DNA of 64,000 nucleotides. It comes from Epithemia pelagica (Eukaryota; Protista; Bacillariophyta). The notes beneath the pieces are model-generated. The model was not told where the DNA came from, did not search any database, and was given only the letters and a program-made list of their open reading frames with translations. Location: positions 3,162,001 through 3,226,000 of the forward strand of contig OX337239.1 in NCBI GenBank assembly GCA_946965045.2, written 5' to 3'. The position numbers and the translations under genes are program-made. Each line of letters begins with the position of its first letter. The stretch's first letter is position 1. Positions 1 through 62,397 of the stretch are shown here, piece after piece.

Positions 1-607
1 TGCTGTTGCGGTTCACAATCGATACATAGTTGTAATGGGTGGCTATTCCAACCATCGCCATTTGTCGTCAGTGGATATTATTGATACAAGGAACCACACT
101 GTCACTGCGGGACCAAGCATGACTGTTCCACGACGATGGTGTGCCAGTGCGGTTATTGGTCACCGCATCTTTGTCGTTGGAGGCCAAAACAGTGACGATG
201 AACTTGATTCCGTGGAATATTTGGACTTTGCAGAGGAGAGGCAAAACGACACTTTGTCTACAGTCATTTCCTTCTCATCCAGTTGGATCACCCATTCTGA
301 TTTGGTGCTTCCGAACCCTCGAGCTTATTGTGCAATGGTTGCCGTGGGATCTTGTCTTATTGTGGCCGGAGGAAGCCGTCAAACCGTGGGAGTGTTGGAT
401 ACGCACCGCAACCGCGTTTGGAATCTCCCATCACTCGGAAATGACCGCTTTGACTGCACTATGGTGGCTGTTGCCAATGAAGTTGCCGTGATTGGTGGTG
501 GATTCAATCCTACCTGTGCGACATTACCACTACTGGACAAGAATGCGTGGTGTTTTCGTTGTCTCTGTGAACAGCAGCCCAACGGACGGTATCAGCTTCT
601 GGATTGA
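1..607 (+). CDS. Kelch-repeat beta-propeller protein K1 (5' end outside window; premature TGA removes C-terminal tail)
   Basis: ORF 35-607 carries Kelch motifs (GPSMTVPRRWCASAVIGHRIFVVGG, LIVAGG, VAVIGG) collinear with blades 3-6 of the other copies. The stop is GGA>TGA relative to K12 (gat gga atg gat), and the homologous tail continues after the stop to ~710. Confidence 0.85.
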   Translation, partial: AVAVHNRYIVVMGGYSNHRHLSSVDIIDTRNHTVTAGPSMTVPRRWCASAVIGHRIFVVGGQNSDDELDSVEYLDFAEERQNDTLSTVISFSSSWITHSDLVLPNPRAYCAMVAVGSCLIVAGGSRQTVGVLDTHRNRVWNLPSLGNDRFDCTMVAVANEVAVIGGGFNPTCATLPLLDKNAWCFRCLCEQQPNGRYQLLD

Positions 608-2406
608 ATGGATATTCGACATGTTCATATTTCACCCTTCTCCACCTCTCATAAACGAGCAAGGCCCGATACACGTCATGGTGATGAAGGCAACGATGAA
701 ACTTGAAGTGGGCATCATGTTGCGTTAATGTCCTAACATTGGTAAAACTATCAAATAATCCTTTTGATTTCAAAAAGTTTTCTTAGTGTCTGCTACCTGT
801 GGAATTATCATGTGAGTCCTTATAGTAGAAATGAAATCATAAATCATGTGCAGAAATGAAATCATAAATCATGTCAATGGCGTGTCCGGGAGAACGAGAC
901 TGTTCCGACACGACAAAACACTGTCATGGATTATGCAGAGTTTTGCTCTGTGTTGAGTGCTAGTGTCATATTCTTGAGTCCTTTGGCAGTCCCTGAAGTT
1001 TTTCTCCGTGACAAGTCAAACTCCCTCGCACCATCCGTTTCCATCCTCGGAATGCATAATCTCCTTGTCCACATGACACGTAGACACTCTCGTGACTGGA
1101 GGCAGACCGAGACGCGCTATGCTCGGAGCTACCTTGATCTAACCAAACATCAATGACAGTAAGCGTTTGCTGTGGCTATACGGTTGATTGTTTTCTTGCA
1201 TTGAGGAGAAAGTGGTGGTCGGAACAGGGGTCGATGGTTTGGACGTCAATGGCAAAAAGGGTTTTGGGTAAGTAAAAGTCTGGGTAACCTTATGGTGTGG
1301 GACTGCCTGAACAACCAGTATGTTCCCGAGCGAGTGGAATTCAACACCAACCAAGAATCGGACATGTGTAGCATGGTCAAAAGGTATGGTGAGAATTCTC
1401 AGTCAGTACCCCAAACCGCGCGGTGGAACCTGACCACTTCGACTACGCAATGTGTGATATTGTCCATCTTGCTTCTGGGGCGACGTAGCATGTAGCATCC
1501 CAATTCCCGAGTGTCGCAAGGTCTTCAATGGCATTCAATCGAGCCACAATGCGCGGCGACTATATAGCAAACTCTCCAGGGTTTGAAAGTCGCTGTTGGC
1601 ATCAAGTTGTAGATGGGACTGATCGAATCCTTTCGATATTCGCACATGAGCGTGTGGAAGCGGCGAGCACCATATGCATCCAAACATGCAGCGTCGTCTT
1701 GGAAGACACGATCAATGGTTGAAAGAGATACCGACAAAGAAGAACCAAGGTCACGCCCGTCCAACGAGCAAGGGTAGCTTGAGAGGTCACCACTGAATTA
1801 CCGCTCCGACCACGACAACCCCACAGTGAATTGCAAACAACAGCAACAAGACAATGATGAAGATAATGACGATGATACCAGACAGTGGTGTTTGGCTGCA
1901 TCGTTTGGTTCCATTTCATTCCAGACTCCAGACAGTGTGTTGTTTGATTTCTGGTTGTTGGTTCGTGGTTAGCCCAACGAGACGACACTGCGTCACATCC
2001 TCAACAATATTTTTTGCTATTGCCCTTGCAATTGCCTGTTTCAATGACTGGTGGGGAGTGGGGGAAGATGACTGAGCTTTCATAAGATCACCCGTCCGTG
2101 ACTGGCTGGGAAAGGCTAGGTAGAGATTCGGAAGAGTAACTTTTTTGGTGAGTGCTCACAACTGAGGGCTGGTCTTATCTTTCGTGAACATTCACAAAGT
2201 TCACAAAAGTTCACAATTTTGCACATGTGTTATGACGTGGCCGTGAAAAATTCGTGAATTTACAAAATCGGATTTGAAACGCTTGTTCACTTGTCACAAA
2301 AAGTTCACACAGTGTCTATCATGTCTAGGTGTAGTCTTTTAGCCCCTACGCCTCTAGCCCCTCCGGAACCACCGGAACAACGAATCCAACTTCGACATCA
2401 TCCACC

Positions 2407-3985: not shown

Positions 3986-5173
3986 ATGAGCATGACACTG
4001 AAAGAACAAGCACGACAGTCGGGCCTTGTCTTATCGGACGCGCCACCTGAATGGAATTTCGAGGACTGGCCTCCTCTTGAGGGTGGATGGCGTTACTATC
4101 ATGCTTCGGTTGTAGTTGATCATACCGATAACCACAAGGAACAAACCGTCGTCGTGTTGGGTGGATATCGAACAGGTCAAGGCGAGCTAGATTCCATTCT
4201 TGTATTGAATCTAGCAGACCCCAGCAAGCAGTGGCGAGAAGGGCCACCCATGAACAAGGCACGTGATGGACATGCCGCTGTTGTTTGCAACGGAGCCGTG
4301 TACGTGATGGGAGGATACAATCAAGGTTCAATTTGGGATTGTATCGAACTCATTGATACCAACGATATACTACAATCATCTTTAACAAAAACCACCACAC
4401 ATGAGAGTCATTGGACAACATTGACATGTCGATTATCAACGGGACGAGTGGGATGTTGTGCTGTTGCCGTGCACAACCGATACATCGTTGTAATGGGTGG
4501 ACGCAGCAATCGTTATTGGTCTTCGGTGGATATTGTTGATACCAGCAATCACACTCTCATTGAGGGACCATCTATGACTGTTCCTCGATCATACTTTGAC
4601 AGCGCAGTCGTTGGACACCGCATCTTTGTCGTTGGAGGCCGAAACGATGACAATGTACTTGATTCGGTGGAGTATTTGGACTTTGCAGAGGAGAGAAAAG
4701 ACGACTCTTTGACGACAGTCATTTCCTTCTCGTCCGCTTGGACCACTCACTCTGAATTGGTGCTTTCCAACCCTCGAGCTTTTTGTGCAATGGTAGCCGT
4801 GGGATCTTGTCTGGTGGTGGCGGGAGGACGAGGCAATTTAAGTTTGGAAGTCTGGGATACGCTTCGCAACCGCGTGTGGAATCTTCGTCGACTGCAAGAA
4901 CAACGATGGTGCTGCAGTATGGTGACCGTTGCCAATCAAGTTGCCGTGATCGGTGGACTGGACAATCGTACCTGTGCGACATTCCCATTAATGGACAAGA
5001 ATACGTGGTGTTTTCGACGACTCTATGAGCAGCCTCAGAACGAATGGTACCAGTTCCGGGAAGGAATGGGTATCCGAGATGCTGACATTTCGCGCTTTTC
5101 CACCTCGACATCAGTTCGTAAACGCGCAAGGTCCAATGCGCACCGTGGTGATGAAGGGAAGGATGAAACTTGA
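3986..5173 (+). CDS. Kelch-only six-blade beta-propeller protein K2 (395 aa, intact)
   Basis: ATG 3986 to TGA 5173, single exon. Six GG-containing Kelch blades, N-terminal closing strand (PEWNFEDWPPL) and basic tail RKRAR. No BTB, BACK or F-box domain. Confidence 0.9.
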   Translation: MSMTLKEQARQSGLVLSDAPPEWNFEDWPPLEGGWRYYHASVVVDHTDNHKEQTVVVLGGYRTGQGELDSILVLNLADPSKQWREGPPMNKARDGHAAVVCNGAVYVMGGYNQGSIWDCIELIDTNDILQSSLTKTTTHESHWTTLTCRLSTGRVGCCAVAVHNRYIVVMGGRSNRYWSSVDIVDTSNHTLIEGPSMTVPRSYFDSAVVGHRIFVVGGRNDDNVLDSVEYLDFAEERKDDSLTTVISFSSAWTTHSELVLSNPRAFCAMVAVGSCLVVAGGRGNLSLEVWDTLRNRVWNLRRLQEQRWCCSMVTVANQVAVIGGLDNRTCATFPLMDKNTWCFRRLYEQPQNEWYQFREGMGIRDADISRFSTSTSVRKRARSNAHRGDEGKDET

Positions 5174-7557
5174 AATTTGCAACGTATTGCATGTATGTCG
5201 TAACAGTAGTGGAATTATAGCATTATCATATTACTCTCAAACAGTAGTTGTAGTGTTTTCTTGATGATATTGCGACCTATAGAGATATCATGTACACCGT
5301 TGTACTAGTATAAAATGAAAGTTACACTATCCGGCATGACACCGCAAACAGGAGTGGAGCCAGGCTTTGGGTAAAGATGCCCATGGTACCATGCCTCTCT
5401 GCTGTTGAATGAGTCGAGTTATCATGCTGTGGAAGATTATGGTTGCGTGCCTGAAACAACATGGCGCAGCGACTTATTTGGACGGTCATCTTCGTTCCGA
5501 CCATGCGTTTAATTGTGTGGGGTCCGGTCCTTCTATGGCTAATGCCTGCGTAAGAGGACAGTACCCCGTCTTTCGATGCTCGTGGCGGTTTTGGGTGACA
5601 GGACAATTGCGAATCCTTTGGAATTTTTAGCACCGACGTGTTCGATATTTCCTCCAATACAGCAACTATTCTTTATCATGAGGTCGGTAATTTGCTCGCA
5701 ATGGACCAGAACGACAACACGGATCGAGTCTCGTCGTTACCACACCATAACCTTCCGAACTACGAACGCAGCCACAAATGAAGAAGTACCTCAATTGGAC
5801 GAAACTGCTGACGGCGCCATTGCCGTGGAACCGACTGTGTTCAATTCCATCTTGGAAGTCGGAGCATTGGCGGCGGCGACGACAACGACAACGAATCAGG
5901 AAACCTCCACCACCGCTATTCCCTGTCGCACTATTGCTCGTTCGAATGCTAATGCCTGGAAACAAGCTGCTCCCCATCGCGATGTCTTGCCCCTCAATGA
6001 CAGTTCCGCCAAACCTTGTTGCACGATTATAACACTGTCGAGCAGCAGTGTTGGACTTCGATCACTACCGCATTTAAGCCTCGTACCGAACTCAGCAGTA
6101 CCAACAACAAAACCGCGACCACGAATGGCGCCGATCATGTCTTGGCTGTAGTCTTATAGAACTTTTGTTGTTGTTCTTCGTTGGATTCTGGTTGGTGTTG
6201 CGAATCTTCGTCTGGTCGATGTGGAAGGGCGATGGGACCCTTTCCCATAATCAATTCTTCACCTGTTGATTCTCCCGTGTCGGGTGCATGACGTAACCGT
6301 GTCGATTCAAATGACGATTGCACCAATGACCCTTGTGCATCAAATCCTCGACAATGCCCACATAGCTCCAAACATCGGAACGAGTCGACAAACTGATGAG
6401 CCGAGTAAAAGGCCACATAGACCACCAAGGCAATTAGTGGCACGGATCAGCCACCATTGGGTGTCATTTGGCAAGAATGACGAACCATCGAGAGTTGTCG
6501 CATCTTTTTGCGGAGATTTGCTGTCCGTAGATTGGAGCGATGCGAACTTGAGGGTCCATGCAAACTCTCTTGCGCTCCTCGATCTATTATGTTGGCAACT
6601 GCCATTGTTTCCCAATGTTGGGACTGATCCTGGGCCTCGCAATTCAATTGTCACGGATTGAAGGAGGCCACTTCATGGTTGTTGTCCTCAATCATCGCTT
6701 CTTGAAGAGACATGTTGTCGCCTTCATCGTGGTCGATGCGATGGAGTAGTCCCCAGCGGGGGTGAGGAGTCGGGTCGCATATGTGTCGTGCTTTTGGTCT
6801 TCTAACTACTCTTTCACGAATTCTCATGACTACCTCCCGCTGGGAGCTAGTCATGGACGTGCACTATGGCCTGTACCTACAATCTTGATGACAGTAAAAG
6901 ATACTAGGTAGAAACGCTAGGAATGTTTTGTGGCGTGGAGAACAACGGGGTCGACGACAATGGACGATGTGGGCCATACCAAGTTCCACCCCACCACCAT
7001 CACAACATGCACTGCGCAACCTTACAGCAATCGTACCGCCGCATCATGGATCACATCATGAATTCGAGATGACTTTTGATGCTTGTCCGTCTCAACCTGC
7101 AATGATCAACCGTAGAACAAGATCAGTGTCCACTGTGCTTCTCGTCGACTCGGTATGCGTAAGGAACCAACAACCAGACAAACTGTGGAGCCTTCATCGA
7201 GAGGGACCACGAAACACTGTGTACTACTAGGACGACGCGTCCCGAAAATTATTTGGCGACGAAACTGACCTGTGCCAGTACCACCACGACAACGACAGGC
7301 ACCCGTTATTCTGGACTCCGACCATCGAACAGCACATCAGGACGGAACAACAAGAGCACAGTGTCAACAAGAACAGGTCGGTCGAAGCAACTGTCACGAT
7401 TTGTCTCGTGACAAAATCTCCTACCCCTCTTTGTTTCATCCATTTCGTACCGTCAGTCGTGCTTCCAGTCCGCACCCGTCAGCATCACAACAACAGACCA
7501 AACCTACGCAAGACAGTGTCTCGATCCCCATAAATTCTGCAGTCGAAAACGTTGAGC

Positions 7558-8765
7558 ATGACAATGAAAGAACAAGCATGGCAGTCGGGCCTAGTCCTTT
7601 TGAACGAAACACCTGAATGGAATGAACACTTTTGTCTCCTCTTATGGGTGGATGGCGTCGCGATCATACTACGGTCGTACTCGATCATCCCGCTAAGAAC
7701 GATAACAACAACCACAGGGGACAAGCAGTCGTCGTGTTGGGAGGATTTTAACAAGGCCAAGGTGTCATCAATTCCATTCTTGTTTTGAACTTGGCAGAAT
7801 CAAATATGCAGTGGCGAGAAGGGTCACCCATGAACAAGAGTCGTCGAACACATGCCGCTGTTGTGTGCAACGGAGCCGTCTACGTAATGGGAGGATACAA
7901 TGGAGGAACTTTGGATTGTATCGAACGAATCGATGCCAATGACTTGCTGCAATTATCCTTACGAAACAGCACCACACATGAGAGCCTTTGGACTACATTG
8001 AATTGTCGACTATCAACCGAACGAAGAGGGTGTAGTGCTGTTGCGGTGCACAACCGATATATTGTTGTAATGGGTGGCTGCGACGATGGTTATTTGCCGT
8101 CAGTGGATATTATTGATAGCGGCAATCACACTCTCATTTCCGGACCATCCATGACTGTTCCTCGGTCATTTTGTGCCAGTGTGGTCGTTGGTCACCGAAT
8201 CTTTGTTGTTGGAGGCTGTAATGAGCATGACAATCTTGACTCGGTTGAGTATTTGGACTTCACAAGGCCATGTGATAATAGGGAGACAGAGAAGGACACT
8301 ACTGCTTCAGTGATATCTTTCTCGTCCACCTGGATCACTCATTCTCATTTGGTCCTTTCCAATGCACGAAGTTCTTGTGCAATGGTTGCCGTGGGATCTT
8401 GTCTGGTGGTGGCGGGAGGACGAGGCAATCCAACCGTGGAAGTATTGGATATGCACCGCAACCATGTGTGGAACCTCCTACCATTCACTAATTACGGTAA
8501 TGGCTGTAGTATGGTGACTGTTGCCAATCAAGTTGCCGTGATTGGTGGATGGGGCGATCCTTCCTGTGCGACATTACCACTAATGGATAGGAAGTCGTGG
8601 TGTTTTCAGCGACTCTGTGAGCAGCCTCGGAACGAATGGGACCCGTTCCGGGAAGGAATGGGTATCCGAGATGCTGATGTTTCACGCTTTTCCACCTCGA
8701 CATCAGCTCGTAAACGAGCTACGCCCAGTACGCAGCGTGGTGATTCAGGAAAGGATGAAACTTGA
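7558..8765 (+). pseudogene. Kelch gene K3, 1-bp frameshift near 7630 (326-aa downstream ORF 7785-8765 remains open)
   Basis: gaacacTTTTGTctcctctt versus gaacacGACTGGCctcctctt in K10 shifts the frame after PEWNEH. Blades 2-6 and the tail are intact downstream. Confidence 0.85.
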
Positions 8766-11048
8766 ATTTTGCGACGTATAAATATTGCATCCATGTCCTG
8801 CAGTTGCAAAACTATAGCATAATCATTTGGTTCTCAAGCACTTTTCTTGTTTTTTTTTTTAATGGCATTGCTAACTATTGAGATGTCATGTCTTCGTTGT
8901 ACTGGTAGAAAATGAAAGTTATAGCGTCCGACATGACCCTGCCGTTCTCCGCATAGAGGAGTGGAGTCATGCTCTTGAGTGCCTGTCCATGGTACCATGC
9001 CTCTCTGCTGTTGAATGGGTTGAGTTACCTGGCTGACCAAGATGATGGTTGTGCGCCTGAAGCACTCTAGTCGGAACCATCAATACCAAACAACGTCAAC
9101 ACATACAAACATGCCGGACACACGCGCGCTTCTCCTCGGCGGTTGTACACAGCGACTCGTTTGGACGGTCGTCTTAGTTCCGACCATGCGACAGTTTGTC
9201 GGTCGGGTCCTTTTATGACGCGTGCTCGTGTCTTCGGGTGGCAGTCGTTATTAGGAAATTTGTGAATTCTTTGGAATTTTTGCACAGCCACAAATTTTTC
9301 AGGAGTCCGATAACTTTATGGGTCGATTCAGCAATCAGTCTCTCCCCAGTGATGTGGCTCTTGGTGAGGCTATGGTCATCGGTCCATGGGAATCAAAAAG
9401 AACATTGCGGTGCGCAACGTCCCAGTTTCCCATGGCATTGTCACGGGGGAAGGCGAAAACGACCATGGTAGTGCTGCGACATCCCCAACCACCACCTCGT
9501 ATCGAAGTATGGCTTGCTCCATACTTTCAACCAGACGGCTTTTCCATTCCAACGTCTGGATTCTAAATTACTGGTCGAAACTTGTTATTCTTCGTTGTTA
9601 AATTCTGGTGGGTGTTGTCTGTCCATTTTCCACGGTAAAACACGTCTACCATCATGGACTGGTCATTACCACTGCACTGTGGTTTGTTTGTTGTTGTTTT
9701 GCGACAGTATTGCTCGTCGATACTGCTTTGTGAATCCAAAATTCTGTTCTCGTGGCCGCAGATCCCCATCCATGACAATGACACGGCATGGTTGTGGAGT
9801 ACAACACCCCAAAGTTGGACGGACAAGACTTGTTTCCAAGAGAGACTGCGCCGATTCGAACCAAGGCTTTGTGTAATCGTGAAGCTGAAAGCACACTTGC
9901 GTCACGTTGACTGAAGAAAAGCATTCTGGTTGCCGTCGTTGCATAGACAAGGACATTGCTTAGAGCTTGTCGGGTGCTGTCAAACTATGGACCAAGCTCC
10001 AGGCCAATAAACACCAGAGAATCGATCGAGCCACGCTCAAACTGCAATGTTGCCGCCGCTGCAGCTACTACCAGGCTTGGATTCACAGTCAGTATCCATG
10101 TTCGCGATCGGTGTTTCATGTCAGAGAACACACAAGCATTGGACAAGGCCACTCTGTCATTGTCTTGTTCATGTTCTTGCCGTTGTCCTACCACCTCTGT
10201 TTCAGAAATTGCGGAACTGGATGTTTTTGGAATAGACCCACAGGAATGCAACTCCCGAATCTGTCAGTCACATCCTGCAATTTCCAACGGCCTCTTTTGT
10301 TGCAACGGTGTATTTCGTCGTTAGTGGTTTGACACCGGCAATTTGACATAGCCTGACACACGAAACTCTTGTACGTTCTCGACGCCAGGTGCATCCAAGC
10401 GACGACTCATCCGGTCTAGTTTTTTCCTTCTTGAACTCTTGTGGTTTTCAATCGAGACAACACCATCACCCATTGGCAAATGTAGCACCGGTCCTGACAC
10501 CCACCTTGGCGAATGGAGGCCCTTGAACCAGTGCAATACGCGTCTGCCACAGGACCAACCTTTGCGGTCCAACCAAATCCACGTGATATTCTCGAAAACT
10601 ACCCAATGAGCGGTGCACATTCGAATCATTGGATCAAGAAGTCAACAAGACCACTCTCTCTGTTGTTGTTGTCGTTGTGAACAGACTGTATAGGACCAAG
10701 GGAAGAATGGTGTTGCTCCATAAATGGCGTGGGACGAGATGACTTGGAAATTAGGGATTGTCAATCTGTGGACCTATTCATCATACAAAAGGACTCTTCA
10801 TCACAAATGTCGCTCTCTCTCTCTCCCTCGTCGTCGTATCTTTTACAGCAAAAGATACTTTTGGGGGCTTGTCATGAAATCTATGTGCGATTGACTGCCC
10901 TTCACCATCGTACGCAGGACAGGCACACCTTTTCTGTCTCCACGCGCCCGGTCTCCAAGCAAAAAAGCAAAGCTTCCACTTCCACGCGTTGCTCTATTAT
11001 ACAAATAGACCCGCTCTCATGCTGCCATTTCTTGTCGACATTGGGATC

Positions 11049-12236
11049 ATGACAACGACACTGAAAGAACAAGCATGGCAGTCGGGCCTTGTACTTTTGG
11101 AAGAGACTCCTGAATGGAATTTCGAGGACTGGCCTCCTCTTGTGGGTGGATGGCGTTACTATCATGCTTCCGTCGTACTGAATCGTACCGATAACAACGA
11201 GGAGCAAACCGTCGTCGTGTTGGGAGGATTCAAACAAGGCCAAGGCTATGTCAACTCAATTCTTGTATTAAATTTGGCAGAGTACAACAAGCAGTGGCGA
11301 GAAGGGCCACCGATGAACAAGGCACGTTATGGACATGCTGCTGTTGCGTGCAATAGAGGGGTTTACGTGATGGGAGGATACAGTCGAGGACTTTTGGATT
11401 GTATCGAACGAATTGATGCCAATAATTTGCTTCGATCATCCTTAACAACCATCACCACGCAGGATAGTCATTGGAAAACATTGACATGTCGGTTGTCAAA
11501 GGAACGACATGGATGTTGTGCTGCTGCGGTTCACAACCGATACATCGTTGTAATGGGTGGCTATAACAACGATCGTTATTTGTCGTCGGTGGATATTATA
11601 GATACAAACAACCACACTGTCACTGCGGGACCATCCATGACTGTTCCACGACAACTTTGTGGCAGTGCGGTGATTGGCCACCGCATCTTTGTCGTTGGAG
11701 GTCATAACGACAATGGCCATCTTGACTCGGTGGAGTATTTGGAATTTACGCAGGAGAGAAAAGACGACACTTTGTCTACAGTCATTTCCTTCTCGTCCGC
11801 TTGGAACACTCTCTCTGAAATGGTGCTCTCCAACCCACGAACTTCTTGTGCAGTGGTTGCCGTGGGATCCTGTCTGGTTGTGGCGGGAGGACGAGGCAAT
11901 GTTAGTATGGAAGTATTGGATACGAACCGCAACCGTGTGTGGAATCTCCTACCATGCGGAAATCGCCGCGATGACTTCAGTATGGTGACTGTTGCCAATC
12001 AAGTTGCCGTGATAAGTGGTTTTGGCAGTCCTACCTGTGCGACATTACCACTACTGGACAAGCATACGTGGTGTTTTCAACGACTCTGTGAGCAGCAGCC
12101 CAACAGATGGTTTCTTTTTGGGGAAGGAAGGAATATCCAACATGCTGATATTTCACCCTTCTCCACCTCGACATCAGCTCATAAACGCGCAAGGCCCAAT
12201 ACACGCCGTGGTGATGAAGGGAAGGATGAAACTTGA
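11049..12236 (+). CDS. Kelch-only beta-propeller protein K4 (395 aa, intact)
   Basis: ATG 11049 (MTTTLKEQAWQSGLVLL) to TGA 12236. Six blades and a KRAR tail. Confidence 0.9.
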   Translation: MTTTLKEQAWQSGLVLLEETPEWNFEDWPPLVGGWRYYHASVVLNRTDNNEEQTVVVLGGFKQGQGYVNSILVLNLAEYNKQWREGPPMNKARYGHAAVACNRGVYVMGGYSRGLLDCIERIDANNLLRSSLTTITTQDSHWKTLTCRLSKERHGCCAAAVHNRYIVVMGGYNNDRYLSSVDIIDTNNHTVTAGPSMTVPRQLCGSAVIGHRIFVVGGHNDNGHLDSVEYLEFTQERKDDTLSTVISFSSAWNTLSEMVLSNPRTSCAVVAVGSCLVVAGGRGNVSMEVLDTNRNRVWNLLPCGNRRDDFSMVTVANQVAVISGFGSPTCATLPLLDKHTWCFQRLCEQQPNRWFLFGEGRNIQHADISPFSTSTSAHKRARPNTRRGDEGKDET

Positions 12237-34260: not shown

Positions 34261-34292
34261 GACAAGGGCGATATCTTTTCAAACACAGTCAA

Positions 34293-42550: not shown

Positions 42551-42563
42551 GGGCGTAATAACC
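42551..42563 (-). promoter_or_regulatory. Probable primer-binding site GGTTATTACGCCC
   Basis: Abuts the 5' LTR on the - strand. Shares GGTTAT...GCCC with the PBS of element 1 but has a different centre. Confidence 0.55.
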
Positions 42564-50227: not shown

Positions 50228-51463
50228 ATGAGCATGACACTGAAAGAACAAGCATGGCAGTCGGGCCTAGTCCTTTTGAACGAAACACCTGAATGGAATG
50301 AACACGACTGGCCTCCTCTTATGGGTGGATGGCGTCGCGATCATACTACGGTCGTACTCGATCATCCCGCTTAGAACGATAACAACAACCACAGGGGACA
50401 AGCGGTCGTCGTGTTGGGAGGATTTAAACAAGGCCAAGGTGTCATCAATTCCATTCTTGTTTTGAACTTGGCAGAATCAAATATGCAGTGGCGAGAAGGG
50501 TCACCCATGAACAAGAGTCGTCGAACACATGCCGCTGTTGTGTGCAACGGAGCCGTCTACGTAATGGGAGGATACAATGGCGTAATGGGAGGATACAATG
50601 GAGGAACTTTGGATTGTATCGAACGAATCGATGCCAATGACTTGCTGCAATTATCCTTACGAAACAGCACCACACATGAGAGCCTTTGGATTTCATTGAA
50701 TTGTCGACTATCAACCGAACGAAGAGGGTGTAGTGCTGTTGCGGTGCACAACCGATATATTGTTGTAATGGGTGGCTGCGACGATGGTTATTTGCCGTCA
50801 GTGGATATTATTGATAGCGGCAATCACACTCTCATTTCCGGACCATCCATGACTGTTCCTCGGTCATTTTGTGCCAGTGTGGTCGTTGGTCACCGAATCT
50901 TTGTTGTTGATGGCTGTAATGAGCATGGCAATCTTGACTCGGTTGAGTATTTGGACTTCACAAGGCCATGTGATAATAGGGAGACAGAGAAGGACACTAC
51001 TGCTTCAGTGATATCTTTCTCGTCCACCTGGATCACTCATTCTCATTTGGTCCTTTCCAATGCACGAAGTTCTTGTGCAATGGTTGCCGTGGGATCTTGT
51101 CTGGTGGTGGCGGGAGGACGAGGCATTCCAACCGTGGAAGTATTGGATATGCACCGCAACCATGTGTGGAACCTCCTACCATTCACTAATTACGGTAATG
51201 GCTGTAGTATGGTGACTGTTGCCAATCAAGTTGCCGTGATTGGTGGATGGGGCGATCCTTCCTGTGCGACATTACCACTAATGGATAGAAAGTCGTGGTG
51301 TTTTCAGCGACTCTGTGAGCAGCCTCGGAACGAATGGGACCAGTTCCGGGAAGGAATGGGTATCCGAGATGCTGATGTTTCACGCTTTTCCACCTCGACA
51401 TCAGCTCGTAAACGAGCTACGCCCAGTACGCAGCGTGGTGATTCAGGAAAGGATGAAAGTTGA
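50228..51463 (+). pseudogene. Kelch gene K10 (duplicate of K3) with in-frame TAG at 50372-50374
   Basis: ATG 50228 is in frame with ORF 50411-51463. The stop is AAG>TAG relative to K3. There is an extra in-frame 21-bp duplication (VMGGYNG) at ~50560-50601. Confidence 0.87.
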
Positions 51464-53745
51464 ATTTTGCGACGTATAAATATTGCATCCATGTCCTGCA
51501 GTTGCAAAACTATAGCATAATCATTTGGTTCTCAAGCACTTTTCTTGTTTTTTTTTAATGGCATTGCTAACTATTGAGATGTCATGTCTTCGTTGTACTG
51601 GTAGAAAATGAAAGTTATAGCGTCCGACATGACCCTGCCGTTCTCCGCATAGAGGAGTGGAGTCATGCTCTTGAGTGCCTGTCCATGGTACCATGCCTCT
51701 CTGCTGTTGAATGGGTTGAGTTATCTGGCTGACCAAGATGATGGTTGTGCGCCTGAAGCACTCTAGTCGGAACCATCAATACCAAACAACGTCAACACAT
51801 ACAAACATGCCGGACACACGCGCGCTTCTCCTCGGCGGTTGTACACAGCGACTCGTTTGGACGGTCGTCTTAGTTCCGACCATGCGACAGTTTGTCGGTC
51901 GGGTCCTTCTATGACGCGTGCTCGTGTCTTCGGGTGGCAGTCGTTATTAGGAAATTTGTGAATTCTTTGGAATTTTTGCACAGCCACAAATTTTTCAGGA
52001 GTCCGATAACTTTATGGGTCGATTCAGCAATCAGTCTCTCCCCAGTGATGTGGCTCTTGGTGAGGCTATGGTCATCGGTCCATGGGAATCAACAAGAACA
52101 TTGCGGTGCGCAACGTCCCAGTTTCCCATGGCATTGTCACGGGGGAAGGCGAAAACGACCATGGTAGTGCTGCGACATCCCCAACCACCACCTCGTATCG
52201 AAGTATGGCTTGCTCCATACTTTCAACCAGACGGCTTTTCCATTCCAACGTCTGGATTCTAAATTACTGGTCGAAACTTGTTATTCTTCGTTGTTGGATT
52301 CTGGTGGGTGTTGTCTGTCCATTTTCCACGGCAAAACACGTCTACCATCATGGACTGGTCATTACCACTGCACTGTGGTTTGTTTGTTGTTGTTTTGCGA
52401 CAGTATTGCTCGTCGATACTGCTTTGTGAATCCAAAATTCTGTTCTCGTGGCCGCAGATCCCCATCCATGACAATGACACGGCATGGTTGTGGAGTACAA
52501 CACCCCAAAGTTGGACGGACAAGACTTGTTTCCAAGAGAGACTGCGCCGATTCGAACCAAGGCTTGGTGTAATCGTGAAGCTGAAAGCACATTTGCGTCA
52601 CGTTGACTGAAGAAAAGCATTCTGGTTGCCGTCGTTGCATAGACAAGGACATTGCTTAGAGCTTGTCGGGTGCTGTCAAACTATGGACCAAGCTCCAGGC
52701 CAATAAACACCAGAGAATCGATCGAGTCACGCTCAAACTGCAATGTTGCCGCCGCTGCAGCTACTACCAGGCTTGGATTCACAGTCAGTATCCATGTTCG
52801 CGATCGGTGTTTCATGTCAGAGAACACACAAGCATTGGACAAGGCCACTCTGTCATTGTCTTGTTCATGTTCTTGCCGTTGTCCTACCACCTCTGTTTCA
52901 GAAATCGCGGAACTGGATGTTTTTGGAAAGGACCCACAAGAATGCAACTCTCGAATCTGTCAGCTTCATCCTGCAATTTCCAAGGGCCTCTTTTGTTGCA
53001 ACGGTGTATTTCGTCATTAGTGGTTTGACACCGGCAATTTGACATAGCCTGACACACAAAACTCTTGTACGTTCTCGACGCCAGGTGCATCCAAGCGACG
53101 ACTCATCCGGTCTAGTTTTTTCCTTCTTGAACTCTTGTGGTTTTCAATCGAGACAACACCATCACCCATTGGCAAATGTAGCACCGGTCCTGACACCCAC
53201 CTTGGCGAATGGAGGCCCTTGAACCAGTGCAATACGCGTCTGCCACAGGACCAACCTTTGCGGTCCAACCAAATCCACGTGACATTCTCGAAAACAACCC
53301 AATGAGCGGTGCACATTCGAATCATTGGATCAAGAAGTCAACAAGACCACTCTCTCTGTTGTTGTTGTCGTTGTGAACAGACTGTATAGGACCAAGGGAA
53401 GAATGGTGTTGCTCCATAAATGGCGTGGGACGAGATGACTTGGAAATTAGGGATTGTCAATCTGTGGACCTATTCATCATACAAAAGGACTCTTCATCAC
53501 AAATGTCGCTCTCTCTCTCTCCCTCGTCGTCGTATCTTTTACAGCAAAAGATACTTTTGGGGGCTTGTCATGAAATCTATGTGCGATTGACTGCCCTTCA
53601 CCATCGTACGCAGGACAGGCACACCTTTTCTGTCTCCACGCGCGCCGGTCTCCACGCAAAAAAGCAAAGCTTCCACTTCCACGCGTTGCTCTATTATACA
53701 AAAAGACCCGCTCTCGTGCTGCCATTTCTTGTCGACATTGGGATC

Positions 53746-54933
53746 ATGACAACGACACTGAAAGACCAAGCATGGCAGTCGGGCCTTGTACTTTTGGAAG
53801 AGACACCTGAATGGAATTTCGAGGACTGGCCTCCTCTTGAGGGTGGATGGCGTTACTATCATGCTTCCGTCGTACTGAATCCTACCGATAACAACGAGGA
53901 GCAAACCGTCGTCGTGTTGGGAGGATTCAAACAAGGCCAAGGCTATGTCAACTCAATTCTTGTATTAAATTTGGCAGAGTACAACAAGCAGTGGCGAGAA
54001 GGGCCACCCATGAACAAGAGATGTTATGGACATGCCGCTGTTGTTTGCAATGGCGGCGTGTACGTGATGGGAGGATACAGTCGAGGACTTTTGGATTGTA
54101 TTGAACGAATTGATGCCAATAATTTGCTTCGATCATCCTTAACAACCATCACCACGCAGGATAGTCATTGGAAAACATTGACATGTCGGTTGTCAAAGGA
54201 ACGACATGGATGTTGTGCTGCTGCGGTTCACAACCGATACATCGTTGTAATGGGTGGCTATAACAACGATCGTTATTTGTCGTCGGTGGATATTATAGAT
54301 ACAAACAACCACACTGTCACTGCGGGACCATCCATGACTGTTCCACGACAACTTTGTGGCAGTGCGGTGATTGGCCACCGCATCTTTGTCGTTGGAGGTC
54401 ATAACGACAATGGCCATCTTGACTCGGTGGAGTATTTGGAATTTACGCAGGAGAGAAAAGACGACACTTTGTCTACAGTCATTTCCTTCTCGTCCGCTTG
54501 GAACACTCACTCTGAAATGGTGCTCTCCAACCCACGAACTTCTTGTGCAGTGGTTGCCGTGGGATCCTGTCTGGTTGTGGCGGGAGGACGAGGCAATGTT
54601 AGTATGGAAGTATTGGATACGAACCGCAACCGTGTGTGGAATCTCCTACCATGCGGAAATCGCCGCGATGACTTCAGTATGGTGACTGTTGCCAATCAAG
54701 TTGCCGTGATAAGTGGTTTTGGCAGTCCTACCTGTGCGACATTACCACTACTGGACAAGCATACGTGGTGTTTTCAACGACTCTGTGAGCAGCAGCCCAA
54801 CAGATGGTTTCTTTTTGGGGAAGGAAGGAATATCCAACATGCTGATATTTCACCCTTCTCCACCTCGACATCAGCTCATAAACGCGCAAGGCCCAATACA
54901 CGCCGTGGTGATGAAGGGAAGGATGGAACTTGA
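53746..54933 (+). CDS. Kelch-only beta-propeller protein K11 (395 aa, intact; duplicate of K4)
   Basis: ATG 53746 to TGA 54933. Nearly identical to K4 except a divergent patch in blade 2. Confidence 0.9.
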   Translation: MTTTLKDQAWQSGLVLLEETPEWNFEDWPPLEGGWRYYHASVVLNPTDNNEEQTVVVLGGFKQGQGYVNSILVLNLAEYNKQWREGPPMNKRCYGHAAVVCNGGVYVMGGYSRGLLDCIERIDANNLLRSSLTTITTQDSHWKTLTCRLSKERHGCCAAAVHNRYIVVMGGYNNDRYLSSVDIIDTNNHTVTAGPSMTVPRQLCGSAVIGHRIFVVGGHNDNGHLDSVEYLEFTQERKDDTLSTVISFSSAWNTHSEMVLSNPRTSCAVVAVGSCLVVAGGRGNVSMEVLDTNRNRVWNLLPCGNRRDDFSMVTVANQVAVISGFGSPTCATLPLLDKHTWCFQRLCEQQPNRWFLFGEGRNIQHADISPFSTSTSAHKRARPNTRRGDEGKDGT

Positions 54934-57900
54934 AATCTGCAACGTATTGCATGTATGTCCTAACAATAGCGGAACTTTAGCATTATCATTTTACTCTCAA
55001 ACAGTAGTTGGATTGTTTTCGTTATGACATTGCGACCTATAGAGATATAATGAACACTGTTGTACTAGTAGAAAACGAAAGTTACACTATCCTGCATTAC
55101 ACCGCAAACAGGAGTGGAGGCAGGCCTTGGATATAGATGCCCATGGTACCATGCCTCTCTGCTGGTGAATGAGTCGAGTTATCTTGCTGTGGAAGATTAT
55201 GGTTGCGTGCCTGAAACACTTGGGCGCAGTGACTCGTTTTGGACGGTCGTCTTCGTTCCGACCATGCGTTCAATTGTGGGGTCCGGTCCTTCTATGGCGA
55301 ACGCCTGCGTGAGAGGACAGTACCCCGTCTCTCGGTGCTTGTGGTTTCGGGTGACAGGACATTTACGATTCCTTTGGATTTTGTGACACCGTCGTGTGTT
55401 CGATATTTTCTCCAATTCGGCAATTTGCTTGCGTCGATCCAGCAATCAGTCTCTCCGTAGTGGCTCGTTGACAGTCCATGGGTATCGGTCCATGGGGATC
55501 CACAAGAACAATCGTAGTGTGCAAAGTTATGTCTTGCCCCTCAATGCCAGTTCCGCCGAAACCTTGTTGCACGATTACAACACTGTCGAACAGCAGTGTT
55601 GGACATTGACCAGTACATCGTTTGTGCCTCGTACAACACCCACACAACCACGACCCGCGCCGATCATGTCATGCCTATCGTCTCACAGCAGTGTTGGACC
55701 TCGATCACTACCACATTTGAGCCTCGTACCGAACTCAGCGGTACCAACAACAAAACCACGACCACGAATGCCGCCGATCATGTCTTGGCTGTAGTCTACT
55801 AGAATTTGTGGTTGTTGTTGTTGTTGTTTTTCTTCTTCTTCGTTGGATTCTAATTGGTGTTGCTGCCTTGTCGTTCCGCACCAACACCAAGCTTGAATCT
55901 TCGTACGTATTAGACTTGAAAGGGCGATGCGATCCTTTCCATAACCAGTTCTCCACTACTCCAATCGGACGCATCGGGAGGAGTTGAATAAGGGTCCATC
56001 CTTCAATCCGTAGTACTGCACTCCTCGTCACGGTGGTCCGACTTTGAGCATTCGTTGCAAACATACGACGTTTCCATTCAGAGCTGTCGTCATAAGTTTA
56101 ATACCAGTTGCTGTAAAGCTCCGTACTTTTTTCGAGCCTCCACATTTTTATGTACTTCCAATGGGGCGACTTTGTTATCGATTCAGCACAGGTCCTTATG
56201 GTGTCATGTCGAGAAAGAGTCCACATATAATTGTCGACCAGACTGCCATGCGGTGCCACAACACAAAGAGATTTGCGTGGTCTTGTAGTATGGTGTTCTT
56301 TTTTCGTCCAGTGTGACAACGACAAATGCGGTTTGGTTGTTGTACTTTTGCTATGGGATTCCATCGTGGTTTCTTTCCTGGCTTGCGCTGTTGCGGCGAC
56401 ACTGGGCTGTAGGAGCACTTCCCACATACAAGTCCAACGCCAAAAGAGAGACATGTCTTCACACCGTCGTCAGATCGGTCCATGGAGATCCACAATAGCA
56501 GTTTGCAGAGTACAAAGTATAGCCACTTTCCCATGGCACTATCACGGAGGAAGGAAAAAAAGACCATGGCAGTGCTGCGGTATCCCCACCAACCACCTCG
56601 TGTCCAAGTATGGCTTGCTGGATTGTCCATGCGAGCAAACAAACGGCAAACATCTGGATTCTAAATGACAGCACTTGTGGTGCATACATGAGTATAACAC
56701 TTTGGTCCTCCACTGTTGAAGTCCAGTGGAGGAGGACAATCTTTGTTACAAAAAGCACAATAGTGGCCGTATGGTGCTGATTGCTGATTTTGTCGTTTCA
56801 ATAACACTTTGGTACTCTACGTTGCACGTCCAGTGGAGGAGGACACAAGAATGGCCGTGCTGATCTTTTTTTGTCGTTTCAGTAGCGGCGCGCGTGCGGC
56901 AGCTGGAAGAATAGACTATTCTTCCCTTTGTTTTTTGTCGTTATAATAGATCTTCCCCCAAACTGTGATGTGGAGTCCCCCCCCCGAAGTCTGTGGAGTC
57001 CCTTCCAAATCTTGGTCGCGGAATGAGGACAGGAATGGCTCGCAGGCGCGCCGACCGAGACGAGCCCTGTCACTCTAAAATATCGATTGATGTCGCCAAA
57101 AGACGACCACTCTTTAATAGAACCTACTGCTACACTCAATGGGAAACAAGGCATCTACGGTATCATCCCAACGGCAACGGCGTTCGATCCACGGCCATGG
57201 CAGCCAAAGAATGATCATCCCAATTGGCAGTCTAAACTCATGGCAGGTATTCCTTGGGAAACATCCAACCACACTCCCACTAGCGCAGCAGACGGACCCA
57301 TAGTATGCATAGCGCAACCTGCCCGTGCTTTTTGTAAAAGACGCCTAGCCAGGTTGCCAACGTCGACAGTTTGCAAGCACCGTATCTAGTCATGTCAGCA
57401 GCAAGTGGCCTTGGCCTTTTCATCCGTTGTATTACTGGGGTTCTTCGCGAGAGACACCACGACCCATGGCAAAAATTGCAGGATGACGAAACTGACCTGA
57501 GCCAGTACCATGACAACGACCGGTACCCGTCATGACCATCGACCAGCAGCAGAAGAAGTAGCAGGATGGAACAACAAGAGCAGTGCCAACAACAACAGCT
57601 CGGTCGACGAAACAACAACAGCTCGGTCGAACCAAGTTCCTTCCCAGACGACTCGCATCACTGCCCAGGTCTCCATCCACGGCCTGTGCGCAGTGTCGTT
57701 GCTTCTCGGTCGATTGGGTATTCGTTGATGGGAACCAACAACCAGACAGACTGTGAAGCCTTCATTGCATTGTTGGGTATTCCATGGCATTGTGATTGGG
57801 ATGTATGGAAATGCCAAACAAAACCCGACCATACTGTACTCCACCACCCATTGCAAGTGACATCCGCAACAACCACAAAAGATCTGACACGAATCCACAC

Positions 57901-58680
57901 GACCTTCATGGCTGTTACGGGCATTCTCCGTTGACGCTTCATGGCCTGCAGCTATAACTTTCTTCTTGTTCGGTACTAAAGGGACTCTTCTTGTCGCCAC
58001 CAGAAAATCGGTCATTCTTTACCCACCAAACTCCCTCGAGATGGTCTGCCCAACGACCCCACAGTGCCCGTGCGCAATCATTGTTTGTGATGAGTCTCTC
58101 TCGACCGACCAAGTGGTCCCAGCAGTTGGTCGTCTTCCCAAAAACAGCCTAGCGCTAATAGATGAGCAACAAGAACTGGGAGCGAATCCTCGTCTGATTT
58201 ACCGCATTCGTCTTCAACATGAGGAAAGTTACGTAATTATGGGTACGAGAAATCTCTTGTTTCTTGTAAGTGTACATCATCATCCCGTGGGTCCTTCTGT
58301 AAGAAGAGTAGTCGTGGTTATCGAAAGCAGAGACTTGGATTGCAAAAAAATCCTCTAGTCATGAGCGCCCACGGAGAACCTATGGATGCAACACAAGGAG
58401 ACAGAGAAATGGATAGGAACCATCTGTCTCGCCATGAGGTTTATTTCGATATCCAAAACCTTTCATGGAGCTCCAAACGTGATCTTTTTCACTGCGTGGA
58501 TATTGTCACGATTTGATGTCTCGTGACGAAAGCTCCTACCCCTCTTTGGTCCATCCATTTCGTGCAGTCAGTCGTGCTTCCAGTCCGCACCCATCAAAAT
58601 CACAACAGAGCAAACCTACGTGCCTCTTATAAGACAGTGTCTCGGTCCCCATAATTTCTGCAGTTGAAACATTTGCAACC

Positions 58681-59895
58681 ATGACCACAACACTGAAAGA
58701 ACAAGCATGGCAGTCGGGTCTTGTCCTTTCGGACGAGACAGCAGAATGGAATGAAAACAACTGGCCTCACCTCGAGGGTGGATGGCGTTCGCTTCATGCT
58801 ACGGTTGTACTCCATCATCCCGATAAGAACGACGACAACAACAACAACAGGCGACAAACGGTCATCGTGTTGGGTGGATGGCAACAAGGCCAAAATGATG
58901 TCAGTTCCGTTTTTGTATTAAATTTAGCAGAATCAAACAATCAGTGGCGAGAAGGGCCATCCATGAACAAGGTACGTTCTGGACATGCCGCGGTTGTGTG
59001 CAATGGAGGGGTCTACGTGATGGGAGGATACATGATGAGAGGATACAATCGAGCATATTTAGATTGCATGGAACGAATCGATGTCAGTGATTTGCTGAAG
59101 GCATCCTTAACACCAAGCAGCACACATGAGAGCCATTGGACGACATAAAACTGTCGTTTATCAACAGGCCGACGTGGATGTTGTGCTCTTGCGGTTAACA
59201 ACCGATGCATCGTCGTAATGGGTGGCAACAACGATCATTATTTGTCGTCGGTGGAAATTATAGATACAAACAACCACACTCTCGTTGCGGGACCAAACAT
59301 GACTGTTCCACGACAAGGGTGTACCGGTGCGGTTATTGGACACCGCATCTTTGTCGTTGGAGGCCAAAACGAGGACGATAATCTTGACTCGGTGGAGTAT
59401 TTGGACTTTGCAGAGGAGAGAAGAGACGACTCTTTGACGACAGTCATTTCCTTCTTGTCGGCTTGGACCACTCACTCTGAATTGGTGCTTTCCAGCCGTC
59501 GAGCTTATTGCGCAATGGTAGCCGTGGGATCTTGTCTGGTGGTGGCGGGAGAACACACCTCAACTGTGGAAGTCTTGGATACGCACCACAACCGCGTGTG
59601 GAATCTTCCACCATTCGTGGATTACCGCAGTGGCTGCAGTATGGTGGCTGTTGCCAATCGAGTTGCCGTCATTGGTGGATGGTGCAATCCTTCCTGTGCG
59701 ACATTCCCATTAATGGACAAGAATACGTGGTGTTTTCGTCGTCTCCGTGATCAGCAGCTTAACGCATGGTGCCAGTTCCGGGATGGAATGGATTTCCGAC
59801 ATGTTCATATTTCACCCTTCTCCACCTCAACATCAGCTAATAAACGAGCAAGGCCCGATACACGCCATGGTGATGAAGGCAAGGATGAAACTTGA
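58681..59895 (+). pseudogene. Kelch gene K12 with in-frame TAA at 59146-59148
   Basis: ORFs 58681-59148 and 59218-59895 are in the same frame. acg aca TAA replaces acg aca TTG. Confidence 0.87.
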
Positions 59896-61239
59896 AGTGG
59901 GCATCACGTTGCATTAATGTCACCTACAATGGTGAAATTATCAAATAATCATTTTGATCTCAAACATATTTATTTATTGTCTGCTACCTGTGGAATTATG
60001 ATGTGAATCCCTGTAGTAGAAATGAAATCATTAATGATGCTATACGGCATGTCTAGGAGAACGCGACTGTTCCAAAACGACAAAACAATGTCATGGATTA
60101 TGCAGAGTTTTGCGCTGTGTTGAGTGCTATTTTTGTCGTATTGTTGAGTCCTTTGGCAGTCCCTGCGGTATTTCTCCGTGGCAAGTAATACTCCCTCGCA
60201 CCACCCGTTTCCATCCTTGGAATGCATCGTCTCCGTGTCCACATAACAGGGAGACACTCTGGTGACTGTGGAGACAGACAGAGGCGCGCTATGCTCGGAG
60301 CTACCTTGATCTAACCAAGCCTCAATGACGGTGAGCATTTGCTCTGGCTACGGTTGATTGTTCTCTTGCCTTGAGAAAGTGGTGGTCTGAACAGGGGTCA
60401 ATGGTTCGGACGTTAATGGCAAAAAGGGTTGTGGGTAAGTAAACATCTGGGAAACGTTGTGTGTGGGACTGCCTCAACAACCACTATGTCCCCGAGCGAG
60501 TGGAATTCAACACCAACCAAGAATCGGACATCTGCACCAGTGCCACTTGCGAGTGTCAGAGTGGTGGTGTGGATGTTGCCGGTTGCCAGTTGTTGTGGTT
60601 TGGGTGGTTGAGACTTTGTCGTTTTGTCTTCAAGGTCCTGCTGCTATTGTCTTGAGGCAGGGCTGCAGTCGTCGTCATCATGCTAGTCATCATGGTTGCT
60701 TGATGAAGCCAGGGAAAAGCTTGACTGGTGGTGGTTGTTGTACCACTCGTTGTTCTACCACAGCTGAGTGACTGTTGACCACACTCGAGGCTTGTTCCAA
60801 TCCTGTACATTCCTGACCCATCCGCAGATGCACCCGTCCACAATTGGCCTTGTTCATTCCGAAGGCTGGTTTCTCTTTGTTGTCGTGACAGTGGGGTCCT
60901 CATCTGGTTTGGCTCTATAAAAGGCTGTGGATCGTTTTGACATGAGGATGCTTCGACGCCTTGTTCTTGTGGATGTTGTCCATCGTTTGGTTTTGGGAAC
61001 AGACGCGCATCTTTTGGGGAAAGATACGCTGTGCTTGCTGTGGTCCTGTCATGAAGTCTATGTGCGATATCGTACGTACGACAGACGCTCTCTGGGCTCT
61101 AAAGCTTCCACGTGTATTGTACTGTAAGAGTCCTCTCGCTTCCATCCATCGATCCATGTAATACCAAAACAACTCACAACAGCCGCAAAAGCACTCTTCT
61201 GTGATCCACATAAATTCTGCAGTCAAAACGTTTGGAAGC

Positions 61240-62397
61240 ATGCCCATGACATTGAAAGAACAAGCATGGCAGTCGGGCCTTGTCCTGTTAGACGAGACAC
61301 CTGAATGGAATTTCGAGGACTGGCCTCCTCTTGCGGGTGGATGGCGAGAGCGTCATGCTTCGGTCGTACTAGATCATCCCGATACGGAGAACGACAACAA
61401 CAACAAGAAACAAACGGTCGTCGTGTTGGGAGGATATCAACAAGGCCAAGGCGATGTCAATTCCGTTCTGCTATTGAATCTGGTAGACCCAAACAAGCAG
61501 TGGCGAGAAGGGCCACCCACGAACAAGAGTCGTCGTGGACATGCCGCTGTTGTGTGTAATGGAGGCATCTACGTGATTGGAGGATACAATGGAAATTCAC
61601 GTCTGGATTGCATAGAATGCATTGATGAAAACGACATATTACAATCATCCTTAACAACCACCACCACCCAATGGACGACATTGAACTGTCGATTATCAAC
61701 GAAACGAGGAGGATGCTGTGCTGTCGCAGTTCTCAATCGATTCATTGTTTTAATGGGAGGACGCAACGGTGGGCAACACTTGTCGTCGGTGGACATTATG
61801 GATACCAGCAACCACATTGTCACTGCAGGACCATCCATGAATGTCCCTCGACAATTTTGTGCCAGTGCGGTCATTGGTCACCGCATCTTTGTCGTTGGAG
61901 GTCATAACTATAATGGCCATTTTGACTCAGTTGAGTACGTGGACTATGCAACACCCTGTGACAATGATGAGACAAAAAAGAAGACTGGTTCAACATTCAT
62001 TTCCTTATCGTCCACCTGGACCACTCATTCTGATTTAGTGCTTTCCAATGCACGATGTTCTTGTACAGTGGTTGCCGTGGGATCTTGTCTGGTTGTTGCA
62101 GGAGGATGGGGCAATTCAACCGTGGAAGTCTTGGATACGAACCGCAACCGCGTGTGGAATCTTCCACCATTCGGAAATCACCGTGCTGGATGCAATATGG
62201 TGACTGTTGCCAATCAAGTTGCCGTTATAAGTGGCTTTGGCAATCCTTCCTGTGCAACATTTGGAATAATCGACAAGAATACGTGGTGTTTTCGTCGTCT
62301 CTGTGAACAGCAGCCCAACGGATGGTGTCTTTTGGGGGGAGGAATGAATATCCAACATGCTGATATTTCGAGCAAGGCCCGAGACACGCCGTGGTGA
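61240..62397 (+). CDS. Kelch-only beta-propeller protein K13 (385 aa; six blades, tail shortened by a frameshifting deletion)
   Basis: ATG 61240 to TGA 62397. Relative to K4, a deletion between gctgatattt and gcaaggccc removes FSTSTSAHKR. Confidence 0.85.
   Translation: MPMTLKEQAWQSGLVLLDETPEWNFEDWPPLAGGWRERHASVVLDHPDTENDNNNKKQTVVVLGGYQQGQGDVNSVLLLNLVDPNKQWREGPPTNKSRRGHAAVVCNGGIYVIGGYNGNSRLDCIECIDENDILQSSLTTTTTQWTTLNCRLSTKRGGCCAVAVLNRFIVLMGGRNGGQHLSSVDIMDTSNHIVTAGPSMNVPRQFCASAVIGHRIFVVGGHNYNGHFDSVEYVDYATPCDNDETKKKTGSTFISLSSTWTTHSDLVLSNARCSCTVVAVGSCLVVAGGWGNSTVEVLDTNRNRVWNLPPFGNHRAGCNMVTVANQVAVISGFGNPSCATFGIIDKNTWCFRRLCEQQPNGWCLLGGGMNIQHADISSKARDTPW

Follow-up and report, generated by a model that had tools for sequence, protein, structure and literature searches.

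The diatom Epithemia pelagica carries a tandem array of Kelch genes on contig OX337239.1 (assembly GCA_946965045.2, positions 3,162,001 to 3,226,000 of the forward strand). In this stretch of 64,000 nucleotides, referred to as the window in its full length, we found 13 Kelch paralogues (K1–K13), all on the + strand, using the listing of open reading frames (ORFs), tblastn with one copy and nucleotide alignment. A typical gene encodes a Kelch-only product of about 396 amino acids (aa) with six blades. Judging from the sequences and a structural model, the array probably represents a germline-encoded repertoire of binding proteins, built from stand-alone Kelch propellers of six blades whose family is very large and lineage-restricted. 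The original prediction, made from the DNA sequence of the window, had described 13 Kelch-only genes. The number of genes and their domain content were confirmed, but not all of them are intact: stops, a frameshift or truncation were found in K3, K5, K6, K8, K10 and K12.

Propeller fold, variable sites and selection

Searches against Pfam returned Kelch families only, with Kelch_1 at E values of 1e-28 to 1e-31 and several further Kelch families over the cut-off. The GG doublet and the arginine that characterize a Kelch repeat are invariant or almost so in all six repeats. An AlphaFold2 model, calculated from an alignment of 83 family members, shows a six-blade propeller with at least 24 strands in six groups. 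The mean predicted local distance difference test (pLDDT) score is 73, with values of 80–95 in the core, while residues 1–23 and 351–396 are disordered in the model. Foldseek matched this model to the Kelch domains of KLHL20, KLHL12 and KEAP1 and to designed six-blade Kelch proteins, with template modeling (TM) scores of about 0.78, E values of 1e-17 to 1e-18 and 18–25% identity. Pfam searches of the full-length copies gave no hit to BTB, BACK or F-box domains, nor did searches at E values up to 10 with the N-terminal 40 aa and with the upstream extension of the K11 ORF. Only about 35 residues precede blade 1, and the possibility of an adaptor hidden in the termini was rejected, as nothing usable appeared at these permissive thresholds. 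The predicted absence of the adaptors usual for Kelch proteins is thereby borne out.

In the numbering of K7, the conserved arginine of the D-A loop is located at residues 36, 93, 153, 201, 266 and 308, and the GG doublets at 59–60, 109–110, 170–171, 217–218, 282–283 and 324–325. Column entropy among the 83 members peaks in every blade at the residue following the arginine (Arg+1) and in blades 1, 4 and 5 also at Arg+2; further peaks are found at some Arg-1 and Arg-3 positions and at GG+1 to GG+5. At Arg+2 of blades 2, 3 and 6 the residue is mostly Gly and constrained. Almost free variation of both codons after the arginine had been proposed from four blades. The dipeptides listed for blades 1 to 4 match the in-frame alignment (e.g. 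YY, RD, VG, EA, WH, SL and ER in blade 1; RW, SY, SF, QL, RQ, AS, KW, QY, QG and QF in blade 4). The proposal holds for Arg+1 in every blade and for Arg+2 in blades 1, 4 and 5, but not for Arg+2 in the other three; its extent was underestimated, since all six blades carry the pattern.

Propeller sites with an entropy of at least 2.4 bits in the family alignment were defined as hypervariable. All 19 of these sites are located in D-A or B-C loops and none in strands or in A-B or C-D loops (Fisher P 7.4e-10 compared to the remaining propeller and 1.9e-5 compared to the bottom loops), which is the enrichment in top-face loops that had been expected. Mean entropy of whole loops showed no significant difference between top and bottom (Mann-Whitney P 0.30). 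The signal consists of discrete hypervariable sites set among invariant framework residues and not of entire loops, in agreement with the nearly invariant framework described before. The reported variation of the loops past the GG doublet in both sequence and length is real as well, and the differences in length derive partly from short tandem duplications.

In solved Kelch structures GG ends strand B, a Trp is found in strand D, and the D-A and B-C loops make up the substrate pocket (PMC4668279, PMC6720452). These loops are also the specificity-determining, non-alignable parts of KLHL proteins (PMC10146909). By analogy, the residues encoded just after the D-A arginine are expected at the inner rim of this pocket. 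Hypervariable sites contain 7.6% Trp and 12.2% Tyr, about 20% together, with Arg, Asp and Glu abundant as well. From base composition about 5% would be expected for Trp and Tyr, and the two residues reach 0.6% at variable bottom-loop sites and less than 1% at other variable sites (bottom loops, tails). This enrichment provides an independent argument against a mere relaxation of constraint.

We determined selection for two classes of sites, fixed beforehand from the motif without regard to variability: 12 codons for D-A (Arg+1 and Arg+2 in each of the six loops) and 18 codons for B-C (GG+1 to GG+3 in each of the six loops). Pairwise Nei-Gojobori comparison of the 13 window copies, with nonsynonymous divergence (dN) taken over gene-wide synonymous divergence (dS), resulted in a ratio (omega) of 2.16 for D-A (95% bootstrap interval 1.49–3.04), 1.38 for B-C (1.01–1.79), 0.53 for the bottom loops and 0.37 for the rest of the propeller. 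Since this comparison is tree-free, recombination cannot mislead it. Phylogenetically independent pairs, compared with synonymous change in the same codons and immune to regional differences in age caused by conversion, showed pN/pS values of 1.8–2.2 for D-A (P 0.014–0.065), about 1 for B-C and 0.46–0.50 for all non-top propeller sites. Counting on per-blade trees, which limit the effect of recombination, was done for 27 copies from the window and four other arrays and gave 2.02 for D-A (P 6.5e-4), 1.04 for B-C (not significant), 0.45 for the bottom loops and 0.44 for the rest.

In the site-by-site test, residues 38, 94, 154, 202 and 203 exceeded the neutral rate at q<0.05, all of them Arg+1 or Arg+2, and the ten best-ranked codons were without exception located in D-A or B-C loops. 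Synonymous divergence (pS) is 0.26 at D-A codons compared to 0.32 gene-wide. Because it is not raised at these codons, the D-A excess is selective and does not reflect a local mutational hot spot or hypermutation. These analyses show that the codons just after the D-A arginine of each blade are under diversifying selection, and that the scaffold, the 22-residue N-terminal peptide and the segment past blade 6 are under purifying selection. A dN/dS above 1 at the variable sites, which had been named as a check, is found at Arg+1 and Arg+2, with values of about 2 by methods not tied to one tree, but not at the B-C loops, where values are near-neutral. The suggested rapid diversification of a family of binders is supported for the residues after the D-A arginine and not for the B-C sites.

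Constant termini, mosaic copies and family size

Residues 1–22 and 336–360 show omega values of 0.38 and 0.36 and are constrained like the scaffold. For residues 1–22 a short helix is predicted with low confidence, and Pfam searches with either segment matched no known domain. The far C-terminal tail is weakly constrained, with omega at 0.80 and about 1.0 around its KRAR motif, and several copies with an otherwise open frame lack it or have it truncated. The basic KRAR tail, on which the idea of nuclear or transposon targets had been built, is weak evidence for that idea. As a candidate for a common docking element we infer the conserved N-terminal peptide to be better suited than the tail.

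The copies are mosaics. The pairwise homoplasy index (PHI) test was significant for the window copies (P<0.001), and the nearest relative switches from blade to blade, often to a copy on another contig. Blades 3–6 of K7 are 92–100% identical to a copy in L001, on another contig, and its blade 1 reaches at best 80% identity to any copy. Blade 6 and the tail of K12 are 98–99% identical to another L001 copy, and the remainder of the gene 79–88%. The 3' flanks of K2, K4 and K13 are 85–89% identical despite a coding dS of 0.41–0.46. A segmental duplication of 8.1 kb, with 98.2% identity over 8154 nt, is present at 7198..15308 (+), where it carries K3 and K4, and at 49872..58006 (+), where it carries K10 and K11. 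Since K3/K10 and K4/K11 are products of this one recent event, they do not count as independent copies. K4 and K11 differ at 18 coding positions, 11 of which fall within a patch of 52 nt that reaches from the D-A loop to strand B of blade 2 (11312..11363, +); such clustering was reached in none of 200,000 simulations. We read this patch as a gene-conversion tract, and a donor was not found among the copies compared. Short duplications of the region around the GG motif lengthened the B-C loop of blade 2: a perfect one of 21 nt in K10, and related insertions in K8 near 23600 and in K12 near 59040. Such duplications offer a simple slippage route to variation in loop length.

We also assessed the size and distribution of the family. 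A word-indexed search returned 679 protein hits, the best 120 of which are 65–84% identical to K7, and an exhaustive profile-free scan of 1.8 billion cluster representatives yielded 142 clusters at E<1e-30. Six relatives, down to 43% identity, were traced to their contigs, and all of them belong to the ENA assembly ERZ21939226, where they sit in further arrays or singly among housekeeping genes. Relatives from NCBI, UniRef, JGI, MMETSP or EukProt were absent from the matches listed, down to about 35% identity, all of these matches being from ENA. Named relatives in other organisms were therefore rejected. In contrast, an acyltransferase from a neighboring contig of the same assembly matched Pseudo-nitzschia and Corethron proteins, although at 39–50% identity only, as would be expected for a diatom whose close relatives are not sequenced. 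By these searches, the family appears to be very large, with hundreds of members, and lineage-restricted. Two distant members (L002:10001-11104 and L003:10001-11128), 38–40% identical to K7 by tblastn, are single genes among housekeeping genes, possibly of an ancestral type and suitable as outgroups.

Evidence on the proposed binding repertoire and alternative explanations

New combinations are generated by tandem and segmental duplication and by exchange among paralogues (recombination or gene conversion), in which copies on other contigs take part. The sequence and length of the B-C loops drift, to some extent via short tandem duplications, and copies are lost fast to stops, frameshifts and Copia insertions, amounting to birth-and-death turnover. 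Each intact paralogue may bind a different ligand via its top face, and the constant N-terminal peptide and C-proximal segment might link every paralogue to one shared partner or location. Ligands would most likely be fast-evolving non-self proteins, such as products of viruses, parasites or mobile elements, as proposed for the expanded ubiquitin-ligase adaptors of nematodes and plants. That the stand-alone propellers form an undescribed class of intracellular recognition receptors in diatoms is a more specific idea, which we put forward tentatively and regard as doubtful. Such a class would be germline-encoded by several hundred genes and shuffled by recombination, with pocket residues tracking viral, parasite or mobile-element proteins and terminal peptides leading into one effector pathway. 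The immune or self/non-self, antibody-like and nuclear-target readings offered by the original prediction are hypotheses drawn from the sequence.

Several observations weigh against a binding repertoire. No adaptor or effector domain known to Pfam links the propeller to a pathway. Omega at the B-C sites is near-neutral at about 1.0 to 1.4, and statistically neutral when compared with synonymous change in the same codons, while strictly independent pairs back a D-A omega above 1 at P 0.014–0.065 only. About half of the window copies are broken, and the family was seen in a single assembly only. The assignment of the variable loops to the substrate face is supported by the strand order of the model and by analogy to published Kelch structures, not by coordinates. 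The loops differ between the paralogues of any Kelch family (PMC10146909), and variability alone is therefore nothing special.

Part of these observations would also be expected from genomic drift, with recently amplified, largely redundant or decaying duplicates whose loop variation reflects relaxed constraint on exposed loops. Five or six of the 13 copies are disabled, the B-C loops show an omega of about 1 and the far C-terminal tail of 0.8–1.0, the transposon insertions are recent, and plant F-box superfamilies have been interpreted in this way (PMC3030570). Drift is nevertheless unlikely: omega of the D-A Arg+1/Arg+2 class is about 2 and not about 1, the scaffold at 0.37–0.44 indicates continuing purifying selection, and hypervariable sites, unlike other variable sites, contain about four times as much Trp and Tyr as expected under neutrality.

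To a similar degree we consider it improbable that the propellers are substrate receptors for endogenous proteins or belong to a selfish system (drive, toxin-antidote or mating incompatibility), in which case the arms race would take place within the genome. Positive selection, tandem arrays and fast turnover would be the same signatures as in a repertoire against non-self proteins, a species-specific F-box gene of nematodes degrades a host enzyme in hybrids (PMC11573670), and Pfam detected no canonical immune domain within the window. However, we saw no indication of a partner toxin or drive gene in the window, the ORFs in the intervals of the Kelch genes show no conservation across arrays, and hundreds of copies are more typical of recognition repertoires.

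A truly antibody-like system, in which copies, whether broken or intact, would donate cassettes for programmed somatic gene conversion into an expressed copy, might account for the many broken copies adjoining intact ones, for short conversion tracts over variable loops and for the tandem blade-1 cassettes of K6 that differ at hypervariable codons. It is very unlikely, however, as the mosaicism we saw is all fixed in a single germline assembly and accounted for by ectopic recombination of the ordinary kind, most copies have their own conserved start codon and 100–180 nt of conserved 5' flank, specialized signal sequences were not seen, and the synonymous rates do not indicate targeted mutation over evolutionary time. 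The mosaicism and the duplications are the outcome of ordinary germline ectopic recombination and slippage, and we saw no sign of a programmed or somatic process in this one germline assembly. The label "antibody-like" would accordingly apply to the diversity of germline paralogues and to nothing beyond it.

Among described phenomena, the closest is found in nematodes and plants, whose ubiquitin-ligase substrate adaptors expanded adaptively. Nematode F-box and MATH-BTB and plant F-box proteins, including F-box-Kelch proteins, underwent lineage-specific expansions with positive selection. In these families the F-box or BTB part is under purifying selection and the part that binds the substrate under positive selection, and recognition of pathogen proteins has been proposed (Thomas 2006 via PMC8120010; PMC3719486). 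The diatom family resembles these adaptors in its hundreds of tandemly duplicated paralogues with birth-and-death turnover, in its lineage-specific tandem expansion on several contigs, and in a dN/dS above 1 at sites of the presumed binding surface (about 2 for D-A) on a scaffold at 0.37–0.44. In contrast to them it lacks F-box, BTB and BACK domains, its constant parts are short N- and C-terminal peptides only, the scaffold is a stand-alone Kelch propeller and the host is a diatom. With the BTB-Kelch proteins of the KLHL type (KEAP1, KLHL12, KLHL20) the family shares the six-blade propeller and variable positions in the substrate-binding D-A and B-C loops (PMC4668279, PMC6720452), but not BTB and BACK, and identity to the KLHL Kelch domains is 18–25%. 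KLHL loops are conserved within a group of orthologues (PMC10146909), whereas close paralogues of the diatom family differ. By its Pfam content the family belongs neither to the BTB-Kelch nor to the F-box-Kelch class. We found no paper on such a diatom family in the open-access literature.

Clustered paralogues, hypervariable exposed residues on a fixed repeat scaffold, recombination and many pseudogenes are also known from the LRR domains of plant NLRs and from the LRR and TPR candidate receptors of brown algae, and the diatom family is alike in these respects. Those receptors are solenoids, whereas a β-propeller is found here, and neither an NB-ARC nor a TIR signaling domain is fused to the diatom propeller. 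Diatoms are major primary producers, and to our knowledge almost nothing is known about how they recognize viruses, parasites or foreign proteins. With its hundreds of members, fixed propeller, positively selected D-A residues and active recombination, the family represents a concrete candidate for a recognition repertoire. If this is true, the principle of a variable surface on a repeat scaffold would extend to the Kelch fold and to stramenopile algae. Even with endogenous targets the family would represent a natural library of Kelch binders, from which one can read the positions where change is tolerated and rewarded.

Copies of the array and neighboring sequences

The window forms part of contig ctg1237l (240 kb), on which the array extends upstream of the window. 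Spacing between genes ranges from 1.3 to 5.3 kb, except for a gap of 21 kb between K8 and K9 that contains two Copia elements. An open propeller reading frame is kept in about seven of the 13 copies. Nucleotide alignment and in-frame translations show K2, K4, K7 and K11 to be full-length, while K1, K9 and K13 have an open propeller frame with the C-terminal tail missing or changed. Premature in-frame stops are found in K3, K5, K10 and K12. Taken together, the array is a site of rapid birth and death.

All coordinates of the copies refer to the + strand. K2 (3986..5173), K4 (11049..12236) and K7 (21857..23047) are intact, K2 with its tail present, K4 as a recent duplicate of K11, and K7 as the reference for residue numbering. 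K11 (53746..54933) has an open ORF of full length in which, within the conversion patch, Cys takes the place of the conserved blade-2 arginine. At 54018-54026 it reads AGA TGT compared to GCA CGT in K4, and it is thus an open full-length copy without the otherwise invariant D-A arginine. K1 (1..607) is cut by the window start; its gene starts 487 nt upstream and comprises an ORF of 364 aa with a stop preceding the C-terminal tail (L007:7107-8201). In K9 (45027..46205) deletions alter the region past the last blade of the open propeller ORF, and in K13 (61240..62397) a deletion removed the tail from an equally open one.

The remaining copies are broken. K3 (7549..8765), a recent duplicate of K10, is a pseudogene that lost 1 nt near codon 28 and has a TAA in blade 1. 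K5 (16363..17547) has two in-frame stops and a variant tail. The pseudogene K10 (50228..51463) has a TAG near codon 50, and its perfect 21-nt tandem duplication is in frame (50560-50601). K12 (58681..59895) is interrupted by a TAA in blade 2/3; the copy that its blade 6 and tail resemble lies on another contig. The N-terminus of K6 (19644..20908) is broken by a frameshifting 77-nt tandem duplication of the blade-1 cassette (19701-19851), and the two cassettes differ mainly at hypervariable codons (YY compared to EA). K8 (23271..24353) is 5'-truncated, beginning at about codon 37, and shows a stop ahead of the tail and a Copia element in its 3' end.

This first Copia-type long terminal repeat (LTR) retrotransposon (24373..31390, +) has LTRs of 275 nt that are 100% identical, and the K7-type 3' flank picks up directly past its 3' LTR. 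Its gag, integrase and reverse transcriptase frames are three separate ORFs. The second Copia-type element (33868..42947, -) comprises a single uninterrupted ORF of 2698 aa between LTRs at 33872-34171 and 42563-42862, which are 100% identical as well. Since the LTRs of each element are identical, both insertions are very recent.

A conserved partner gene within the array was rejected as a candidate: the minus-strand ORFs of 240–280 aa between the Kelch genes of the window and four other arrays are mutually non-homologous, and Pfam gave no match for them. TIR or LRR genes were not found in the window or just upstream, and an LRR-TIR gene suspected just upstream was rejected, as the 737-aa ORF in question has no Pfam hit and is unlike the weakly TIR-like ORF found in a different array. 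On two other contigs, the Kelch arrays contain one ORF with a weak match to TIR_2 (L005:3482-4843, -; E 1.3e-4, below the cut-off) and one with a weak match to LRR_6 (L006:5153-5917, -; E 0.003), which hints at TIR and LRR genes possibly being interleaved with some of the Kelch arrays.

Between K1 and K2 an ORF at 2407-3213 (+) with an ATG start encodes 268 aa including a basic KKKPKR stretch, without a Pfam match; an identical protein is recorded on its own contig only. An interspersed repeat of about 1 kb is present three times in the window (14290-15308, 42971-43997 and 56988-58006), with 96–100% identity and a common right-hand end. It contains a long minus-strand ORF without a Pfam match that looks non-coding, and one of its copies immediately adjoins the second Copia element.

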